Counted from the first letter of the stretch, positions 2,822 to 49,271 are shown. The stretch is DNA of 64,000 bases from Takakia lepidozioides (GCA_030704615.1 CM060731.1:32922001-32986000); one strand, 5' to 3'. Program-made: numbers and translations. The notes: generated by a model not told the origin, from the letters alone.

Positions 2822-5800
2822 CTCCCACTCAGCACTGTGTTGACTTAACACGTCTCCCACTTCAACACGGTGCTTTATTAAGAGTCCCGGGGAATTGTCA
2901 TTCCTCCTAAGTTGCGAAGTTGAACAAAGCGATCTCGGGGTAGCGGCTTGGTCAGCAAATTTGCGATCTGATCCGCTGTAGGTATGTACGTGATGGAGAT
3001 ATCACCATCATGCTGGGTGTCACGGGTCTTATGGAACTTCGTATCGATGTGCTTGGTTTTCTGATGGAAGACAGATTGATGACCAACCGTATCGCTGCCT
3101 GATTATCACATAATAAGGTCGTCCAAATAACTTGTGGAAAACAAACGCTTGACAGAAGTCTGCGCATCCATAGAAGCTCCTGAGTGGCAAGACAGGCAGT
3201 AACATATTCAAATTCGGTGGTGTTCACTGCGGTACATGTTTACTTCCAGCTCCCCCAAGCTCCGGGTCCATTGTTTAGCATAAGGATGAAACCCGACCTA
3301 GATTTCCTGTCGTCAAGGTCTGATGCAAAATCCGCATCACAGTAAGCGGTAAGTTGGTGTAGATGGTCACTAGGCCATACGTGATACAATGTCCCAACGT
3401 TCCCTTGATATACTTCAAAATTCGTTTGACAGATGTCACATGAATGCTCCTGGGGCTGCTAAAACGTGAAGCATTGCTGACAGAGTACGTGATGTCAAAC
3501 CGCGTACCTAGGGATGCCCATTGGGACTGCCAACACATTCTCGGTATGGATAGTTGGCAATTGGCTCAGTGATTGTGTCCTTGTCGCCAGGCACGAGTTG
3601 CCCTACGCTGTGAGGGTCTGCTGGGACAACTACTAGATTACAGTTCTCCTGACCAAAACGCTGAAGGACTCGCTCTAGATATCGCCGTTGGTCAATGTGG
3701 ATCAGACGGCGGTCTCGATCCCTTGTGATATGGTAGCTGGATAGGTATCGTGTTTGCAGGTGCTCCCACTTGTCTAAGTGCAGCAGGGATAAATGACAGC
3801 GGTAACGGTGCTGCCACTGGTGCTGGTGCAACAACTGGTGGCCGAATATATGCGGGCGGTGGAACAATTGGTGCGAAGACTGGTTCTAGGTTGCCCTCGA
3901 CTCGAAGCCATTGCGTGGGATCACGTTGGCTCCCGCTAAGGTCGGCTTCACTAAAGTTCTCATCAAAAAGAACATCCCCGCTTTCTTCAATACGACGCAG
4001 TTCATTGATCCATACTCGATATCCTTTACTTGTGGCGGAGTAGCCCATGAAAACACCCTTTCTACTCTTTGCCGAGAGTTTCTTTCTGAGCGCTTTAGGG
4101 ATGTGCACATATGCATCCGAGCCAAATGCTTTGAGAAGTGCTACTAATGGTTTGATCTTATACCATTCCTCATACGGTGTTCTCCCAGATGTCGTTCTTA
4201 ACACTGTTTGATTCAACATGTATACTGTTGTGTGGGCTGCTTCGGCCCAGAACCTGGTGTGTACATTTGCCGCATGTAACATGGTTCTTATAGCCTCAAT
4301 AATCGTTCTGTTCTCCCGTTCCGAGGCACCATTCTGTTCTGGCGTGAACGCAATGGTGAGATCCTGCTTGATCTGCTGTTCATCCAGGTATTTCATGAAG
4401 GCTCCATTCGTGTCCTCTCACGATCACTTCTGAGGATCTTCGCTGAGTTGCATGTTTCACGTTTGAGCTGAGCCACAAACCGCTTGAATGCAACAAAAGT
4501 TTCTGGCTTAGTCTTCAGACACTCTGAACCCGGATGAGTCATCCTTGAACAAGCCCCTCCCACTGATGGTACATTTAGAGGACCACACAAATCTGTATTT
4601 ACAAGATCACCTGGAAAATGTGACCGTTGCCTGGGCTCAGTGGTTGGGAATGGGTTTCGATGTTGTTTTCCAAATGCACATCCCGGGCAGTTCACCGATG
4701 ATCTTTACTGGTGAGCAACGGTCTTTCCACCAGTTCTTGCGACGCCATTATCTGTATCATCGCGTGATTGGTGTGTGAGAACCTCCGATGCCAAAGTTCA
4801 AGCGACTGCTTGCATTGAGCGACTGTCGGTGCACCAACTGTGCTGGTGGACATCGCAGAGATGGTGTCCTCAGGTGGGATAGCTTCAAAGTGCATTTGAT
4901 ACATCCTGTTGTCAACTACTCCAGCCATCATGTGCAACCTTCCCTTCCTCCAGCTATTGACATCCAATGTCTATGTGTAGTGTGTAATGCTTCCGCTGTG
5001 CTGCAACATATGACGAAATAAATTTCGGCCAAGATTTGGACCATACACTACACCTTTTAGCACGCCATAGGTAAACTCGTCAGCCTACTTGATCTTTGAT
5101 AATAATGTCCTCAATTCCAGCAGCTTGGAGCATCACCCCATCGATACCTTCTACTGGGCGATTCTCCGTCGAGATGTTTCTGCAAGTCAAGAAGAAAGAT
5201 TGATTCAATGTCCGTCATATGTTCAGTACACCCACTGTCAACATACCAGAAAGTGGACTCATGCGCTCTAGTGGAGCTGAAACTTGAGTCACTTGCCATA
5301 TAGGCCTTGAAGTACCCGCCGACATGTTCTTGCTACCTGAATCCGTCTTGGTGCTCGCTTCTTGGCATTCTGTGACTCTTGGAAAATCCGTTGGTCTTCT
5401 TCTGGTGTCATGCATTCATGGTCCCAATGGCCAGGACGACCGCACTTCCAGCAGTCGGTGTTCTTATTCCGATCATCAATCTCCTTGCGTCTTGCCGCAC
5501 GTTCTTCAGGGGTATAGTCCGATGGCTTCTTGCCTCTTGCAGATGCCAGATAAGCCGCTGCTGTTGTTACGCTCGCATCCGCACACAACGCACAAAAAAT
5601 TATGTTTTATGTTTCATTCAACATCTGAATACTTTCTTTTCCAAGCTCTTCTTATCGGTTTTAAATCAGACACTGGTTCATCTGAACCATCAGCTGTTGG
5701 TAGTTCCAATTCTCTGTTGAATGTTACGAAGTTTCTTTCTTTCTTTGACTCAGATACTACTCTTGAACGTCCCTTTTGTCTGAAGAAGCTGCAGAGTCAG

Positions 5801-23207: not shown

Positions 23208-26200
23208 TCACCAGTACTCCCCGCAAGAACAAACCCCATCTTCGAAGTGATGAAAGCGGTTGGCATCCCGTACAACAATTGCTCGCCCGACAATCTTTGA
23301 GATGAACTTGGTGGCTGTGTGGCAGTCACCACACATCCGAAGGTTCTTGATGACACGGAGAGACGTCCCAGACGCTGTGCTGATCAGCCCAAAAGCAATG
23401 GCCAGCTTCTCACTGTGGTGGCAAAGAGTAAATTCCTTTTGCTCCTCCTCCACGTCATGCAATGCAAAGCGTGTGTCAGGCATGTACCCTGCCTCCTTGA
23501 TCTGCCCAGTCAACCTTCTCAGCTCCATCTGGATTTCCTCAATTTGTGGATGCGATTTGTCATCTACAACGAACGTGTGTATCCCGTTGCCAATCTCAAT
23601 CCAGCAGCGACCTGGCTCCTTTCTGACACCTCTGGCCTTCATCATTTTTCGCAACTTTGCAGTGTCATCCCACCTGCCAGCTGCAGCATAAATGTTTGAT
23701 AGCAGCACATAAGCTGCAGCATCCTGCGGGTCCCACTTGAGAACAGATTTTGCAGCACGTTCTGCTATGTCCACATTGCCATAAATTCTGCAGGCACCAA
23801 GCAAGGTCCCCCATGCCACAGCATCAGCTTCAATTGGCATTTTGCTGATAAAATCCTCTGCCTCACCCAATCGCCCTGCACGTCCTAGAAGGTCCACCAT
23901 GCAGCCAAAGTGCTCCACTGTAGGAGTGAGACCATAATCTCGACTCAGGGAGTCAAAGTAGTGTCTACCTTCATCCACTAGGCCAACATGGCTACATGCA
24001 GAGAGAACACCTATAAAGGTCACACTGTCCGGCTTCATGCCTTCCTTTTCCATTCCTTCAAATAGCTGCAGGACCTCCCTATGACGACCATGCTGGGCAT
24101 ATCCTGCGATCATCGCATTCCATGACACCACATTTCGTTCAGCCATATTGTTGAATACTCTCTTTGCATCCTCAATGCTGCCACATTTGGCATACATGTC
24201 CATGAGGGTATTGTCCAAGATGATATTTGGCACAATTCCAGCTTTCATGATGTCAGCATGGACCTCTTTGCCTTTTTCCAGGGCTGCCAAGCTGGCACAT
24301 GCATTCAGCACTCCAACGAATGTGATCTGGTTGGGAGTCACCCCTTCCCTCGTCATTTCCTCATAGGTCTCCAAAGCCTCCATCCCACACCCATGCTCAG
24401 CACATCCTGATATCATTGCACTCCATGATACCACATTTCGTTCAGCCATATTGTTGAACACTCCCTTTGCATCTTCAATGCTCCCGCATTTGGCATACAT
24501 GTCCACGAGGGCAGTGTTCAAGATGATATTTGGCACAATTCCAACTTTCATGATGTCAGCATGTATCTCTTTGCCCTTTTCCAGGGCTGCCAGGCTGGCA
24601 CATGCCTTCAGAATGGAAACATATGTGACCTGGTTGGGTGTCACCCCTTTCCTCGTCATTTGCTGATAGGTCTCTAAAGCATCCATCCCACACCCATGCT
24701 GGGCATATCCCGCAATCATCGCACTCCATGACACAACATTTCGTTCAGCCATGTTGTCAAACACCCCCTTTGCATCCTTGATGCTCCCACATTTGGCATA
24801 CATGTCAACAAGGGTAGTGGACAAGATGATATTTGGCACAATCCCAGTGTTCATGATATCAGCATGGACCATTTTGCCCTTTTCCAGAGCTGCCAGGCTG
24901 GTACACGCCTTCAAAACACAAACAAACGTGACCTGGTTGGGTGTCACCCCTTCCCGCATCATTTGCTCATATGTCTCCAAAGCCTTCATCCCACATCCAT
25001 GCTGGGCATATCCTGCAATCATCGCACTCCATGACACAACGTTTTGTTCAGCCATACTGTTGAACACTCCTTTTGCATCCTTGATGCTCCCACATTTGCC
25101 ATACATGTCCACCAGGGCATTGCCCAAGATCATATTCGTCAAAACTCCAGCTCTTATCATGTCAGCATGGACCTCTTTCCCCTTTTCCAGAGCTGCCAGA
25201 CTGGCACAAGCCTTGCAAGCCCAAAGATAAGTGACCTGGTCAGCCTTCACCCCTTCCTGTATCATTTGCTCATAGGTCTCAATAGCAATCCGGGCAAACC
25301 CATGCTTGGTATATCCTGCCATCATCACAGTCCACGAAAACATATTTCGTTCGGGCATTTTGTGAAACACTCGTTGTGCATCCACGATGCTCCCACATTG
25401 GACATACATGTGGACAAGGGTGTTGCATAGAAATATGCTTGGCTTCAGTCCACTTTGGATAATATGGGCATGGACCTGCTTTCCTGCTGCTAGGCCTTTC
25501 AACTTGATGCACTTATGCAAGAGACACACATATGTATCAGAGTTTACAGAAATGCCTCCTTGGTTCAAAATGTGCAGAGCCTCTTCAACTGGTCCTCCTG
25601 CCTCACATAGTTTCCTCAGATGCCCACAAGTGCCAGAAGAGATCTTGTGGACTCCTTCTCTTGGTCCTCTTTCAGAAGCAGTGGTCATAGTGGAGGTGCC
25701 TGACTCTATCAACTGTGTTGCTGCTGCTTCCACTTGACCATCTACCCATGCAGGTTTCATGTAGCTATCAACCCACAATGCCTCATTGGTACTTTTGTGC
25801 TTGATATCCGGTCCTCTTGGATGGATCTGACCCACAATCCATTACTGCATCCTGAGATACCCCTGCCTCCACAACAATAATGCGTAGATCCTCCCCTTAC
25901 TGCTAGAAGCTGACAATGACAGCACAAAATCTACCTAGCAAATACCCTACCCCTACTTATCATACAACTAGTTTCTGCAAACTTGACAATTTCCAAGAAA
26001 GCTTATTGATGCATCTTGTTATCTGCTCCAGCTTCAACATGACCAGGCTTCACCTGTCTGCCTCGATTGTCCCACCATGGACTGGGGTTGGAGAAATATT
26101 CCTTCCAAAGCTTCTCCTCGCCTTTATATTCAGTTCTTTGATATTTGCCTGTGATCCCATTGGCAGTAACATGTCAAACACACTCGGAGCCACCATGGAT

Positions 26201-26697
26201 CCACTCGACAAGCTACTTTAAAACAACCATGAGGAAAAAGTAGGGTGGAATCTGATAAGGGAAAAACAAGCCCAAATGCCTTGAAGAAGGGTGTCCTCAC
26301 CACATTGTCCTTGAACTTGTGTCATGGCAGCAGCTAGTTTTTCTTCCACCCAAGGAGGGTTCAACCAACCCTCAATCCAAAGGACCTCTTGTGCATGTTG
26401 CTTATGTCTGTAGTCCGGCGATCTTGTATCTGTCTGTGAAAACCACCAGGACGCAGCTGGGCAGCCATAGTACACAGCATCTAAGACCAAACTGATCACT
26501 TGTAATCACCAGGAAAAGTACATGCGCAACGTTTTTTCATGGTCTACTTAGGGAGCACACCCTCTGAAACTGGTAGTAAGCGCAAATTTTGCAGAACGGG
26601 CTCCTTCGCATCCTACATGAAGAAAGCGCACCTTGTCAGCGCTGCAGTCCAGCCATTGTGAAGGATCTTTAAAGAACTCCTGCCAGCGCTGTCCCAT
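23208..26697 (-). CDS. PLS-class pentatricopeptide repeat protein with E1/E2/DYW domain (putative C-to-U organellar editing factor) and two N-terminal OSB-type PDF motifs; true start may lie further upstream (e.g. ATG at 27125)
   Basis: Main exon 25826-23208 encodes 17 P/L/S motifs, E1, E2, PG box (PGRCWIE), HSEKLA...CGDCH and terminal CSCGEYW. Upstream exons 26697-26632, 26433-26301 and 26148-26054 splice in frame through GT-AG introns of phase 0, 1 and 0. Confidence 0.9.
25725..26690 (-). other. Two PDF (OSB-type ssDNA-binding) motifs encoded across four exons
   Basis: WQEFFKDPSQWLDCSADK|TDTRSPDYRHKQHAQEVLWIEGWLNPPWVEEKL and LWKEYFSNPSPWWDNRGRQ|IHPRGPDIKHKSTNEALWVDSYMKPAWVDGQV match the recalled OSB consensus W..FF.NP..WWDNR....P..PDFKHK.T.EALW....P.WV...L. 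Confidence 0.85.
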
Positions 26698-27429
26698 GCT
26701 CCATCGTTGATCTACGTGCCGGACATACCAAAGCTTCAAGAGGGCAAGATTGTCGATTATAGCTCTTGTATGACCCTCCTGTGTGCTTCTTTAACCAAAT
26801 TAGATTAGGCTCTGCTGGAGAAATCAAAGGACATAGCCTGGAGCGTACGTTGCATATAACATAGCGAACCCAAAATGGAAACTACAAAGTGTTTCATATA
26901 ATCACCTAGATTCATCGGCATTCCCGAAGACTTGGGAGGCGCCATGGCTACCAATTGCAAGGGACTCAGTCCTTGGTGCATTGCCAAGGAGGATGCGGCT
27001 GTCAGCTCCATAGCCCAGCCCCTTAATTTGCTACTTGATGCGGGGCCTCTCGCATCACCGAATTGAGAAGGAAGGGCCTTGGGTATGGAGTCCACATGCG
27101 AACTTGGGTACACGCAGGCTGCCATCCCCACCTGGCACTGAGCCTGAAGTAGAAGATTTTTCGTACAACCCACCCAGCACTTGGCCCCCGATGCAACAAA
27201 CGATTACCTCCTCTTCAATACTGAGAAAGACCATTCCGCGTCAAGGGTAACCTGCTTGGTTGACTAGCTTGATTCAGCCTGTGGCCCAAGGGGACCTTGA
27301 GGGGACCTTGTTGTCTTCTTCAAGTAAGCAGCAGCAGGACTAAATCCATACTACGCAGTTTGCAGGGGAGTGTTATCTTCTCTTTTAATCAACATAAAGC
27401 AGAAATATGTAAGGTGTAAATTTCTCTCT

Positions 27430-27752
27430 AATACCCGGCAGTTACCCATCCGGTTTTATATATATGACCTGCGGAGGTGAAAAAATGAAGTAACCGGTCC
27501 AATTAGGAACCGGCGGAGGTCAGGCATTCAAATAACCCTAGCAAAGAACCTTTTAAAGAACAGCCGGCCCATACCCGCGGTTATTTGATGAAAATCGCCG
27601 GTTCTTTGAGGTTTTTGCAAGTAACCGCAACCGCAGGTTATATCTAGCCATAAAAAATCTAATAACCGCAACCGCAGATTAATAGTTTCCTGAAATTTAA
27701 AGCAACCGGAACCGCTGGTTATAAATAAAATCAAATAATTGCCCAACACTGG
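27430..27752. mobile_element. MITE remnant of the same family as 40070-40427
   Basis: aaccgg/ggttat-rich interior and terminal aaataattgcccaacactgg, matching the right end of the 40070-40427 element. Confidence 0.6.
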
Positions 27753-34924: not shown

Positions 34925-35418
34925 TGAGGTACCTTATGTTCATAGAGATGTTTTTGTCGCCCGAAGTGCTTATGTCATCGGAGATGTGAAAGTTGGGAAG
35001 AGATCCTCTAATTGGTATGGGTGCGTGCCTCGAGGCAAGCAAACCCTCAAACCTTGGCCAACTTGGTATCGGCTTCCGCTATTTGCTTTTGTAATGTTTC
35101 GGTGACAGTAAGACATTGTTCTTAAATCCATTGCATGGATTTATGGCAGGGCAACAAAGTTACTATAGGTACAACTTAATTAGCCTCGCATAAAGGGGCC
35201 AATCCCAAATGTTTACAATCTAAGAAATTGGGGATTCACCCTAAACTATGTAGTGTCTTTGGCTTCTGTGAGATGGTGGTGACAATTGATGAGAACCTCA
35301 AGCATTCTCAACATCTATGGTGGATGTGAGGAGGGCATAACGCAGTTCTGCATTCATGCATAGTGGAGAACGAAGCATTTGTTGGCATTGGGGCCACTCT
35401 TCAGAATGGAGTGGTTGT
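34925..35418 (+). pseudogene. Gamma carbonic anhydrase (mitochondrial complex I CA subunit) remnant, two exon pieces
   Basis: VPYVHRDVFVARSAYVIGDVKVGKRSSNWYGCVPRG (~34928-35035) and GHNAVLHSCIVENEAFVGIGATLQNGVVV (~35333-35418) match recalled plant gamma-CA hexapeptide repeats. Confidence 0.8.
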
Positions 35419-38142
35419 GGCATATGCTAGCCGCTCAAACAATGATGCCGAGGCGAAGTATAGTTCATATGAAGTGGAGTATCTAGCTGCGGTATGGGCA
35501 GTAACACATTTCAGATGCTACCTCTATGGCAATCTCTTCACCCTTATCACGGATCACCAACCATTGAAGTGGTTGATGGAGTCAGACAAGCTTACAGGGA
35601 AGCTTGCACGGTGGGCACTTATGCTTCAAGAATATGACTTTCAGGTGGTGCATCGAGCCGGTATTGTCAATCGGGATGCAGATGGATTGAGTCGTAATCC
35701 ATGCACGAGTGAGCATGATGATACTGAAGCTCGGTGGCATGGTGAGACGGATGAGGAGATGGTGCCAGGATGACATGCATCTGCCTTTTTGTGCATCCTA
35801 GCAATGGGAGCTCAAGCTGGTCCATCCCATAGCATTGGTCATGTAGATGGTGTGCATGACGATCCGGAGATCAGTGAGGAGCTTGGTGGTGCTAAGGATG
35901 TGCATGAAGATGCAGCAGTGTTGGCCTACCTTTGTATTAGAGAGACAGCAGCCAGTGTGACTGCTAAGGAAAGAGATTGGATCCTACAACGAGCCAAGAG
36001 GTTCAAGTGGGAGGGGACTCATCTATTCCGAGTATGGGAGGATGGATGAGTGAGGATTGTGCCTCATCCAACACAACGAGCGCGATTGGTACGCCATGCC
36101 CATGAGGAGTTATGACATTTTTGGGTGCGACACACTCATAGTTTGTTGCAAGGACAGTACTGGTGGCCGGGCATGCACACGGATGTGCAACAGTTAGTGG
36201 CAAGGTGCATGGTGTGTGATAAAGTGGGAGCTTCTTACAATGCACCTACTCCACAATTGCATCCTTTACCCATTATGGGTTTGGGCTATCGTTGGAGTCT
36301 TGACTTCGCAGGCCCATTACCACTAACGACTCATCATAACAAGTATGTGCTGGTGATGGTGAAACATTTCTCCAAGTGGATTGAACTGGTGGCATTGCCT
36401 GACAAGGTAAGTGAGGGGGCTGCGTATGCATTCTTAGATCGAGTGCTTAGCCAATTTGGTGCTCTAGCCGAGGTACTCACAGACCAGGGGAGAGAGTTTT
36501 TGGGGGAGTTTCAGGCTTTGTGTAAGCAAGCCTTGATAGATCACCGCACTACTTCTCGGGATCATCTCGAGGCTGATGGCCTGGCAGAGAGGGTTGTACA
36601 AACAGTCAAGCGAGGCTTGCGCAAGTATGGCTTGCATAAGGGACACTTAGGAGATTGGGACCTTCAGCTACCTTGGTTGGCCATGGGCTACAGGTTTAGC
36701 AAACAAGCATCGCTTGCCTCGTTCTCGCCTTATTTCCTTCTCTTTGGCCGAGAGCCAGATTTGCCTGCATTTATTCACAGGGAGACTGCAGTAGTTCTCA
36801 ACCTTGATGATCCGGATGTGTAGACACAAGCATGTGCCCAGCGGGCAGAGTTGTTCATGCCTATGGCTTTTGAGAACCTTGCTATTGCCCAACACCGAGA
36901 CACATTGAGGTACGCCGCTATATGTGGAGGGGGATATCGGCTAGGTGTTCGGCGTTTCCACCCTGGGGACTATGTGTATCTGCAGCAGACATCATCTACG
37001 ACTTTGGATGTCACATGCAGCAGGGCGTGTGATTCTAAGGGTCCGGGAGGTGTTGCCTTCAGGAGTGTTGATTCAAGAGGGTCGAGATGGCATGGTATGG
37101 AAGGACCATGTGCGCAATTGTGCGCCATATCAGCTTCTACATGTGGATGAGAGGATAGATCCCAACCTTGCAGTGGTACCTGCAGGGTTGCGTTGCATGT
37201 TATGTGGGCATGCTGGTGGTGCCGCGACCATGTTGGTGTGTGACAAATGCTCAAGGGGGTGGCACATGGGATGCTTGACATCGCCACTTGAGGAGGTTCC
37301 TAGTGGAGAATGGTTGTGTCCACGATGCCTTGGACATAGATAGTGGGCATGACAATGGTGGAATTGACAAGTGATCCGAGGTCTAGCTGATGGGAGCTCA
37401 ACGCCATGGATACTTAATTGAAGATCATGGATTGCAGGAATGCGAGTAACAATGGGGCTACTTTTGCACCCGGCCTCTTGATCTATTGACTTTAGGTACT
37501 GGGACATGTGCGATTGAAGACCAAGCGATGATTTTATTGAGATGGATATTTGTCAGCTATCCGGTGTTAGAGAGACCTAATCACCAGCTAGGGGGGCGAT
37601 TGTGGCATAGCTTTCTAGGATTGTGTGCTTAGAAATATATGGTGGACAGCGATGTATGTTGTGGCACGATGCTTAGGTGCCCGACAGCTGTTATGGTTTT
37701 AGTCATGGTTAACTAGAATTACCTACTTCTAGTTAACTATGACATTTTGGATATTTATATTTGTATTTTGTGTGTTGGGACTTCATTTGGTCTCATATGC
37801 CAAGTGAGGTGTCAAACCTCACTTGGGACATGGGGATGGGTTTTCCCCTTGTGAGTGTTGAGGAGGGCTCATCTTCTTGTAGTTGAGCCTCCATGAGCCT
37901 TTCCCACCTCCATAGCTTTAGGTATTGAGAGGGGGTGTGGTGAGGGCTTTGTAGGATGGATTCCTTTAGCATATGTGCCCTTGGCTTGACTTAGTTTATG
38001 TGATTGAGTGGATTCATGAGTGGAGTGTTTCCATTGTGTGTTCACTTCCATTATCATTGTGGCATAGCTTTCTAGGATTGTGTGCTTAGAATGTATGGTG
38101 GACAGCGATGTATGTTGTGGCACAATGCTTAGGTGCACGACA
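35412..38142 (+). mobile_element. Ty3/Gypsy LTR retrotransposon 3' half: RNase H, integrase, C-terminal PHD finger, PPT and 3' LTR
   Basis: VVAYASRSNN..YSSYE..LITDHQPLKWL..ARWAL; YWWPGM..C..C; WSLDFAGP; VLTDQGREF; ADGLAERVVQTVK; PHD CMLC..LVCDKCSRGWHMGCL..WLCPRC (~37193-37330); PPT agctaggggggcgat; LTR 37601-38142 with TG...CA ends. Confidence 0.9.
37601..38142 (+). repeat. Gypsy 3' LTR with an ~85-bp direct repeat at both of its ends
   Basis: 37601-37686 is nearly identical to 38058-38142 (tgtggcatagctttctaggattgtgtgcttagaa...gcttaggtgc(c/a)cgaca). Confidence 0.75.
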
Positions 38143-46369: not shown

Positions 46370-49271
46370 CTAGTGTGGCATGTGCCGTTGAGCACACATT
46401 GTACCATTGTTTTATTGGCTCCTCTTTATTCTAAAGAGGGGACGCGACTACGCATAGGTGTCAAAATCGCTAAGCCCCTCTTGTGCCTTCCCCAGATGTC
46501 ACCTCATCTCCTTTGCTGAAAACTATTTCCTATGCCTCCAGGTAACACCTCCCTCAGGTAACATCTCTCTTAGTGAATAATTTATGAAGAATAAATTGAT
46601 GAATTCTCAAGTTTATTATGGATGAAAGTAGATGTCACTATTCACAAAGAGGATCCATACGCGACAAGTCGCTTGTTAATATATACGTATTTACACTTAT
46701 GACCAAAAGACAAATGACAATAACATCCTGCTGGCCCATGAAGCGCTTCACCGGGCAAATCTGAACAATCAGCCTCTTGCTTTCTTGATGTTGGATTTTG
46801 AAAAAGCTTTTGACTCTATTGACTGGACATTCCTCCTCGCTGCTTTGGAAAAAACAGGTTTAGGTGGTCAGTTACTGTCTTGGGTAAGGATCCTTCTTCA
46901 GTCTGCCTCTAGTAAGGTAATGGTGAATGGTGTCATCTCCCAATCATTCCCTATCTCTAGGTCGGTTAGACAAGGGTGCCCATTGGCACCTTTCCTCTTT
47001 CTCATTGCGGCAGATTCTCTTGGGCACTTGTTTGAAGCCAGGCAGGACATTGTGGGCCTTCATTTACCTACCTTCCTGCCGGAAATGGCGAAGCTGTCAA
47101 TGTATGTTGGTGATACATCCTTACTGCTGGACAATTCATCCCGGGACAACATTGATCATGCACTTCAAGCCCTGCACATTTTCTGTCTTGGCTCTGGCTT
47201 GAAAATCAATTGGGGAAAGTCAGTGGGACTTCTCTCGGTGTTGCAGAGTCAGGCTTCTTCTGCTCACTGTGCTACTTGGGGGGAAGACATTGGCCTCCGA
47301 TGGCTTCAGGAAGGGGAATCCCACACGTTGTTGGGCCATCAGATTGGAATTAATGTGTCCCAAAAGAGCAGAATGTAGAACGTACTTTCCAGATTGAAAA
47401 GATTTCTTGCCCATGGAGCTCTTCCATGCTCTCAATTGATGGACGGGCACCGGTGGCAAACCAGGTTCTACTGGCCTCTTGTTGGTTCTCTGCAGCAGTG
47501 TGGGACCTAGGTACCTCCATGGTGAAAGAGATAAAAGCTCTTATTCGGAATTTTATTTGGGGCGCAATAGCGCAAACTCCGGTAAGACGGGCTCTGCTTT
47601 CTTGGGAGCAACTCTGCCAGCCCAAAAAGAAGGGGGGGCTTGCAATTTTGGATCCAACGGCACAGATCAAGGCTCTTTTAGCCAAGTGGATCCCTAGGGC
47701 CATTACGCACCGTCACAGCCCATGGAGTAAATTGATCCAGCCTTACTTGATGGGTGCCAAACCCTCTTCATCCCACTTGTGGGCAGATTCACTTCGCTGG
47801 ATTGTTCAAGGGAAAAATGTGAACGTGCACTTGGGATCCCGCCCATGGCAATCCATATGGGCTGCTTGGCAGTCTCTTAGGGACAAGCTCACTCAAAGAC
47901 CACCGGCAAACTCTGCAGAGGCCTGGCGACAACCTCTGTTTTGGAACAATGTTTTCCAGTCTCAAACACTGTCCCTGCAAAGACCAAAGTGGGCCTTATG
48001 GGGGCACAAAGGTCTTACTCATCTGGTCAAATACTTGGGAGCAGGGCAGTTACCTATCTCCAGCTGCAGTGACACAGAGTGTAGGGGCCAGACGAGCCGC
48101 TGCATGGCGTTCTCTTCTTGCAGACGTGCCAGATTCCATAACTGACCTATTGAGAAATGGAGGTGACTTGGAGGCCTTGCCAACTTGGACAGCTGAAACA
48201 ACCAACGGAGGTGGTACTGTCATGCTGGTCCTTTCTATGAATGATCAAATAACCTCTGGAATTTAGTTCATTTTAGACTGTGAGGACAACCTGCAGTTGA
48301 CAGGCTATGCGGATTTGCACAAGCAATCATTGTGCTTGATGACAAAGGAAATGCCAACCCAGCCCCACCGGGGGGGGGGGGGGGAATCGCAATGGGCCTT
48401 GCACTCCAGTTTCACTTGATTTCTACGCTATCCCTTGGCTGCTTTACAGTTCGACCCCGAGGAATGGAGCTGGAAGGATGAGCACCACTCTTCTTTCTTT
48501 GCTTATTCGGTGAAGTTAGGTTATTCGTTGTTGAGACCCATAACAACCTTCTTCTCTAGGTGGTCCGAAAAGTGGGGGCATTTGAATATGTCATCAGCCA
48601 ATTGGGACTCGGTGTGGAAAGATATTATATGGAAAAAACAAAGGGCTGCCAAAATCTCAGGCTTCTTGTGGAAGCTAGCTCATAGAATCTTGCCTGTCAA
48701 TGCCAAGACCTTATTCAACAATGCTACTTGCGGTTTGTGCATGTCACACCCTGAGGCCATCGAGCATTGCCTGGCAGACTGCCCCTTCCCTGCTAGAGTT
48801 TGGAGAGCTGTGTTACACTTTTACTCATGTTGGGAGTCTTTTCCATCCCCAGCCCCCTCCTCTCTTCTGCTCTTGAATTTTTTGCCTGCTCACGTGCCAT
48901 CTGTTTGCCCTGTGTGGGCAAGTCTAAGAGCTTTAACCTTATGGAACCTCTGGAAGGTTAGATGTGCTCTTGTTTTTGAAGGGAGACCCCCCAAGGGCAG
49001 GTATGTGTTTTTTTGCATTTATCAAGACCTGCTTACTGAGGGAAACCCAATTTGTTATTTTTCATTAACTTCTCTGAGTGACAAAAAAATACTTGAAATT
49101 CAATACTGTAGGTCCAAAAATTATGAAACCACCTTGATGCACTCTGCTCATCAAGGACTTTCCAGTGGTAGTAAGAACCTACGTGGAAGCCTGCTTGCAG
49201 TTTGGGAGATCTCAAGGTGACAAACAAAACAAAACAAAACAAAACAATCTATAGTGTCCTTAATATATTGA
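46370..49271 (-). mobile_element. Non-autonomous Helitron-like element carrying a LINE RT segment
   Basis: Minus strand begins TCAATATATTAAG (49271) and ends with hairpin gtgtgc-tcaacg-gcacat plus gccacaCTAG (46370); interior homologous to the 49272-50052 element. Confidence 0.65.
46718..49044 (+). mobile_element. Internal L1 ORF2 segment (RT core through zinc finger)
   Basis: NNILLAHEAL, LDFEKAFDSIDW, SRSVRQGCPLAPFLF, YVGDT, GLKINWGKS, KKKGGLAI, FLWKLAHRILP, CGLC..EAIEHCLADC, LWNLWKVRC; ends LLTEG. Contains stops and frameshifts. Confidence 0.92.

Follow-up and report, generated by a model that had tools for sequence, protein, structure and literature searches.

A PPR-DYW gene of Takakia lepidozioides with two OSB-type PDF motifs ahead of its PLS repeats, a probably expressed member of an apparently undescribed PDF-PLS subfamily

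The gene described here lies on the minus strand of a 64,000-nucleotide stretch of the Takakia lepidozioides assembly (GCA_030704615.1 CM060731.1:32922001-32986000), referred to below as the window. Its features are collected in Table 1. A preliminary description had proposed four exons, of which the three small upstream ones splice in frame to a long PPR exon. The joined frame runs from the ATG at 26697 to the TGA at 23208 and encodes 970 residues with 0 internal stops, and the three introns all display GT..AG borders with phases 0, 1 and 0. The four exons were thus retained as proposed, whereas the 5' end had to be revised, as an additional upstream exon (exon 0) had been overlooked. The second half of PDF2 and the PPR array are encoded by one uninterrupted frame of exon 4, and the fusion therefore does not depend on splicing alone. 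Elsewhere in the window, RNase H and integrase fragments of an LTR retrotransposon (35330-36820, plus strand) and a reverse-transcriptase fragment, likely of the LINE type (46680-47375, plus strand), were observed.

Table 1. Coordinates of the gene and of the domains it encodes, in positions of the window
Feature	Position	Strand	Remarks
Exon 0	26906..27125	-	Ser/Ala/Pro-rich leader, putative organellar transit peptide; start ATG uncertain
Intron 0	26712..26905	-	phase 1, GT..AG; predicted junction
Exon 1	26632..26711	-	N-half of PDF1; 19 bits alone; holds the ATG (26697) of the preliminary description
Intron 1	26434..26631	-	phase 0, within PDF1; position and phase as in Adiantum (L001) and Sphagnum (L003)
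Exon 2	26301..26433	-	C-half of PDF1; 28 bits alone
Intron 2	26149..26300	-	phase 1, between the PDF modules; phase matches Adiantum
Exon 3	26054..26148	-	N-half of PDF2; 30 bits alone
Intron 3	25827..26053	-	phase 0, within PDF2; position and phase as in Adiantum and Sphagnum
Exon 4	23208..25826	-	C-half of PDF2, linker, PLS array, E1, E2, DYW, stop
PDF motif 1	26329..26691	-	split by intron 1; OSB-only profile
PDF motif 2	25725..26119	-	split by intron 3; OSB-only profile
17 PLS repeats	23823..25541	-	motif parsing: L1-S1-(P1-L1-S1)x4-P2-L2-S2
E1 and E2 motifs	23619..23822	-	Pfam E, E+; motif parsing
DYW:PG cytidine deaminase domain	23211..23618	-	PG box, HSE, CxxC, stacking Leu, second zinc site

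Contig 8 of a public run (X1, see below) is identical to the window over 26906-27200 (0 differences) and its alignment ends exactly at the GT donor at 26905, leaving 26 letters unaligned. The GC content is 0.56 in exon 0 and 0.42 in the following intron. When this donor is joined to the AG before 26711, the phases are compatible and the frame remains open into exon 1; a second in-frame acceptor is present at 26762. A phase-1 intron is also found about 9-21 codons before the first Trp of the PDF in Sphagnum, in Adiantum and in two OSB genes. It is very probable that exon 0, with its 3' end at 26906, is joined to 26711 in phase 1. With 27125, its first in-frame ATG, taken as an uncertain start codon, exon 0 adds 78 residues ahead of Met 26697 and extends the gene to 1049 codons. 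These residues are 42% Ser, Thr, Ala or Pro and include 6 basic and 4 acidic ones; they would supply the leader needed by an organellar factor in the form of a putative transit peptide. Upstream, the proposed start is overlapped by an out-of-frame ORF on the minus strand, which spans some 60 codons from 27234 to about 27055, and a TATA-like run occurs near 27460.

The small exons had been described as encoding two complete PDF motifs related to those of the OSB (organellar ssDNA-binding) proteins. An initial profile, made from PPR-fused motifs, retrieved 1275 of 1.84 billion representative proteins at E<=0.001, including proteins named OSB1-like or OSB2-like and proteins with the Pfam SSB domain. 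In order to avoid circularity, an OSB-only profile was then built from 135 PDF motifs found in 57 matches with an OB-fold. With this profile PDF1 obtains 48 bits and PDF2 65 bits, single exons reaching 19-34 bits (34 for the PDF2 half in exon 4), and a six-frame scan of the 64-kb window returned E<0.001 in these four exons only. The OSB homology is thereby upheld and the motifs are indeed of full length, but their consensus is not intact, PDY and PDI standing in place of PDF. Pfam family PF26713 was tried as a marker of the motif and rejected, being also present on matches devoid of PDF.

An AlphaFold model of a homologous PDF displays a helix, short strands and a helix (pLDDT 92). In the ESM Atlas it resembles a cluster of the SSB family from streptophytes (TM 0.88) as well as three PPR clusters (TM 0.84-0.87), while comparison with the PDB using Foldseek and VIA-align gave no convincing match (best Z 3.6). 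A sequence search of the PDB likewise gave no convincing PDF match, the PDF exons searched singly matched no Pfam model, a word-index search with the part of exon 4 that encodes PDF sequence, a short and divergent query, returned nothing, and an ESM feature search produced no match. Searches and fold predictions took single exons or natural homologues as input, the spliced frame being analysed by local scripts. Since the PDF has no Pfam model, solved structure or clear PDB neighbour, the module could previously be overlooked. The PDF model also aligns, over about 58 residues, to two ESM Atlas clusters of hypothetical proteins (187-199 aa) from tailed phages, the Uroviricota (TM 0.64-0.69), and on this modelled likeness a phage origin of the fold is possible.

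Some of the profile matches carry the motif in other settings. Two dinoflagellate proteins contain multiple PDFs, 9 in Effrenium voratum (P0157, without Pfam match) and 7 in Cladocopium (P0163), whereas the motif was said to be confined to green plants (PMC4166229). A Kingdonia uniflora protein of 1160 aa (P0155) contains 13, compared with a reported maximum of five in OSB proteins (PMC13393729). PDFs also occur in proteins named ICR2-like in Striga (P0180) and kinesin in Coptis (P0188), which are probably gene models merging OSB genes with their neighbours.

The window protein shares with Arabidopsis OSB1-4 a homologous tandem PDF, the predicted fold and a phase-1 intron shortly before the first PDF. 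It differs from them in several respects: its PDFs are N-terminal whereas those of the OSB proteins are C-terminal, the signature Phe is replaced, and each PDF is split by an intron that is absent from that place in the two angiosperm OSB genes checked. Moreover, Pfam detected no OB-fold or SSB-like domain, either in exons 1-4 or in the ORF that lies upstream at 26808-27203, and only 78 residues precede PDF1. On its predicted architecture, the window protein is an editor and not an OSB.

The PPR moiety is of a familiar type. Pfam detects PPR, E, E+ and DYW_deaminase (E=1e-43) in exon 4, and the DYW region of 136 residues retains the PG box (PGRCWIE), the HSE and the CGDC. Of the residues described in PMC13324415, the domain keeps the zinc ligands, the catalytic Glu and the Leu used for stacking. 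From the P2 repeat to the end, the protein aligns gap-free over 306 residues with the editing-active consensus PPR-DYW of PDB 9KFX. The 17 PLS repeats, E1/E2 and DYW domain with PG box and HxE/CxxC site attributed to the gene by the preliminary description are therefore borne out by motif parsing, Pfam and this alignment. The P/L/S array ending in P2-L2-S2, the E1/E2 motifs and the complete DYW place the gene in the PLS-class DYW:PG group; the KP box and altered catalytic motif of the U-to-C DYW:KP group are absent, a PG box and HSE being found instead. The middle PLS triplets are 303-nt tandem duplications, 76-87% identical. PLS triplets, P2-L2-S2-E1-E2, the PG box and HSE/CxxC are held in common with the PLS DYW:PG factors PPR56 and PPR65 of Physcomitrium and with 9KFX, with respect to which the window gene has four extra small exons for the two PDFs that stand between its leader and its array, and ends in EYW rather than DYW, the terminal Asp being conservatively changed to Glu.

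PLS arrays bind RNA from N- to C-terminus along the 5'-to-3' direction, with the S2 repeat at position -4. The standard PPR code predicts nYGnYAnAAnAAnYUnn as the target of the array, at -20..-4, and this orientation places the PDFs beyond -20, on the 5' side.

Contigs of two public runs (X1 and X2), presumed to be RNA, were aligned to the window at 85% likeness, at which paralogue contigs dominate the table of joints. Intron 2 is skipped precisely in both runs (152-nt joint, CT..AC on the plus strand), possibly in a paralogue given this likeness. The junctions of introns 0, 1 and 3 are predicted for the exact copy, as none appears among the 15 joints listed out of 662. For the three junctions of the preliminary gene model, transcript data thus show the intron 2 joint, albeit perhaps of a paralogue, and introns 1 and 3 stay predictions within the same 15 of 662 joints. 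At the sites listed, about 56 paralogue contigs cover each of the exons flanking intron 3, compared with 1 within the intron. An exact X1 contig of 199 nt covers the first repeats (25296-25494), and the gene is probably expressed. Paralogue contigs at 26669-26710 reveal a tandem, diverged second copy of exon 1.

Two contigs, X2 record 16 (96% identical) and X1 record 7, spliced at intron 2 and running on into intron 3 (window 25884-26300), show PDF-only or incompletely spliced forms among close copies; such a close paralogue or isoform would yield a short product with PDF alone. One may ask whether the upstream exons belong to a separate PDF-only transcript that is never joined to the PPR exon. 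The frame of the 96%-identical X2 contig would stop soon after exon 3, and the pyrimidine tract at the intron 3 acceptor is weak. However, exon 4 opens with the second half of PDF2 (at the score given above) and has no other obvious leader, and in homologous genes the equivalent of intron 3 is present and the annotated products are joined. We consider a separate transcript very unlikely and retain the joined gene.

Similar N-termini had been mentioned, in the preliminary description, for unannotated bryophyte and fern proteins, and such proteins were indeed found in several Sphagnum species and in Adiantum, as well as in the lycophyte Diphasiastrum, carrying one to three PDFs on PLS proteins. 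Examples with the same architecture are KAJ7568880.1 and KAJ7558666.1 (Diphasiastrum complanatum), KAH8950713.1 (Sphagnum) and KAI5061374.1 (Adiantum capillus-veneris). These relatives are annotated merely as hypothetical or PPR proteins; most have consensus PDFs and many lack the DYW domain. In the list of PLS matches, which is not a random sample, the PDF is present in 19 of 29 Diphasiastrum proteins, several of the other 10 being models that start just past the motif. In the same list it is absent from 5/5 Adiantum matches and the 1/1 Selaginella match, some of these models being partial, and from all gymnosperm matches (0/54).

The intron phases of the window gene are those of the mapped Adiantum and Sphagnum PDF-PLS genes. 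The Adiantum gene shows the exact 0-1-0 pattern at the same motif positions, and the Sphagnum gene has a phase 1 intron before the motif and a phase 0 intron inside it. The common internal intron suggests a single old origin, and a phase 1-1 cassette explains changes of PDF copy number by exon duplication. A fast tree computed for P2 through DYW does not decide on the origin: 4 changes of the PDF label are required, the position of the window gene carries no star, and the sole PDF group joins moss and lycophyte sequences (SH-aLRT 93).

Constraint on the module was estimated from three sets of Sphagnum orthologues; a fourth (c3) was excluded as its leaders came from differing gene models. Variable columns amount to 3/171 in the PDF, 15/177 in the leader (Fisher p=0.006) and 90/2231 in the PPR region (p=0.21); the PDF is less variable than the leader and does not exceed the PPR region in variability. 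All three sets end in E motifs and are devoid of DYW, which indicates that selection acts on the PDF independently of a deaminase in cis.

Taken with its homologues, the window gene proves to be real and probably expressed, and belongs to an old PDF-PLS subfamily that apparently has not been described. A literature search, which covered mostly open-access articles and not the first OSB publication, found no account of PDF-PPR fusions; within the same limits no functional description was found either, in line with the preliminary description. Of two surveys from 2026, the one on OSB proteins demanded an OB-fold as well as a PDF and contains no mention of PPR, and the kingdom-wide one on editing-factor fusions does not mention PDF or OSB (PMC13386178); the extra domains listed for Physcomitrium PPR proteins are RRM, LAGLIDADG, SMR, NYN, CBS and SAP, without PDF (PMC9459714).

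The window copy departs from the family in the state of its motifs. All 61 fused and all 145 OSB motifs compared (100%) carry the signature Phe, which is replaced in both window PDFs (Tyr in PDF1, Ile in PDF2). PDF1 also lacks a near-invariant Arg (93-99%) and has Leu at the second Trp, and PDF2 has Gln at a near-invariant Lys (95-97%). By score the two motifs rank in the bottom 7% and 13% of the fused ones, relative to a comparison set that was picked by profile score and is biased towards the consensus. Their net charges are -3 and -1, the mean for the PDF being +0.8. The residue losses and low scores make it plausible that the PDFs of the window copy are weakened or partly redundant. These losses and low scores would also be expected if both motifs were decaying passengers on a gene that acts as an ordinary PPR-DYW editor, the function of the module being real elsewhere in the family. 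Paralogue contigs carry other letters than the window copy at some of the eroded sites, and a Sphagnum PPR-DYW gene has merely a stop-terminated PDF remnant upstream. This remnant, half a PDF at 4579-4700 of locus L005 ahead of P0006, whose annotated product has no PDF, is an apparent loss of the module. Decay is nevertheless rather unlikely: over four small exons neither the frame nor any splice site is damaged, the core Trp (all four) and the Pro, Asp, His and Lys positions survive in both motifs, and the comparison set has the consensus bias mentioned above. Because of the eroded motifs, the window copy is not the best family member for a first experiment.

The interpretation that we tentatively prefer, while giving it somewhat less than an even chance, is that of a C-to-U RNA editor whose PDFs form a putative clamp, binding single strands beside the PPR footprint without regard to sequence. 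According to this model, a nuclear gene of a seed-free land plant would produce a PLS-E1-E2-DYW:PG factor which, imported into an organelle by means of the exon 0 leader, would edit cytidine to uridine in an organellar transcript. The two PDFs may derive from a gene of the OSB type, taken over early in the evolution of land plants as a phase 1-1 cassette bounded by introns. They would grip the RNA just 5' of the footprint as a built-in, sequence-independent single-strand clamp, either raising affinity or holding the site unfolded, an analogous helper role being filled in seed plants partly by separate proteins (MORF, ORRM). The clamp is probably weakened in the window copy, because both PDFs lack near-invariant residues.

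The clamp reading draws on the intact frame and domains, the alignment with 9KFX, the OSB-only profile scores, the fold likeness of the PDF, the architecture found in moss, lycophyte and fern proteins, the intron phases and the constraint in Sphagnum described above. Also in its favor, the PDF of OSB1 alone is sufficient for ssDNA binding (PMC6963530). MORFs are restricted to seed plants (PMC13386178), and their distribution is opposite to that of the PDF in the match list, a correlation only, drawn from a non-random list. Among known systems, RRM-PPR fusions and ORRM/MORF proteins are comparable in that a PPR array is accompanied by a further domain that binds nucleic acids or acts as a helper (PMC13386178), the PDF being an unrelated domain. 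On the other hand, recombinant OSB1 and OSB2 prefer ssDNA over RNA (PMC4166229). Physcomitrium DYW factors are moreover reported to edit alone in E. coli (PMC6397227); to that extent, a PDF-like helper is not generally required.

The ssDNA preference of OSB PDFs and the equal conservation of core residues in fused and OSB motifs may instead mean that the fused PDFs still prefer ssDNA and hold the editor at nucleoids or R-loops for co-transcriptional editing, much as had been envisaged at the outset for nucleoids or transcription bubbles. The linker between PDF2 and the PPR array of the window gene (about 30 residues, with little structure-forming sequence) would suit such a tether. In Sphagnum and in one Diphasiastrum clade, however, about 10 residues separate the PDF from the first repeat, abundant free OSB proteins would compete for ssDNA, and, as a milder objection that concerns a bubble tether, PPR orientation would put the N-terminus of the array on the far side from the polymerase, at the 5' end of the RNA footprint. 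A nucleoid tether is accordingly judged unlikely.

The ordered junction in the AlphaFold model of a PDF+PPR homologue (P0288:78-300, pTM 0.82) fits a fixed packing. It is compatible with the PDF being a structural N-cap or protein-interaction module, which would stabilize the PLS solenoid or oligomerize editors and bind no nucleic acid; the near-neutral net charge of the PDF and the tetrameric state of OSB2 agree with this. Yet the long linker of the window gene and of the main Diphasiastrum clade disfavors fixed packing, the OSB1 motif binds ssDNA by itself, and the P0288 model was judged on its pTM and the order of its junction. We regard a purely structural role as quite improbable, and the clamp is kept as the preferred reading.

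It had further been speculated that the fusion directs deamination to ssDNA. Designer P-type PPR proteins bind ssDNA (PMC9508816) and SsdA, a bacterial member of the DYW family, deaminates it (PMC11789416), so that a PDF fusion retargeting the deaminase to single-stranded organellar DNA would be a natural C-to-T base editor. This possibility is disfavored: the PDF stays under constraint in Sphagnum groups devoid of DYW, the DYW domain is of the canonical DYW:PG type known from RNA editing, its nearest counterparts being gymnosperm editors (up to 70% identity) and 9KFX, and a factor that alters DNA permanently would be needed a single time. In the literature searched, no plant PPR-DYW protein was found to be reported as deaminating DNA. 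That the fusion acts in this way is highly improbable, and it is equally so that PDF-PPR-DYW proteins of seed-free plants engage and deaminate ssDNA such as the displaced strands of R-loops or replication intermediates. If it were true, PPR-programmed ssDNA deamination would link RNA editing to organellar genome mutation.

Seed-free plants have up to thousands of organellar edit sites and no MORF helpers. A conserved, apparently undescribed module of 55 residues on the PLS proteins of mosses, lycophytes and ferns is a candidate built-in helper, and could serve as an add-on for synthetic PPR RNA editors. The PDF-PLS fusion also ties the organellar DNA-maintenance toolkit of the OSB proteins to RNA editing.
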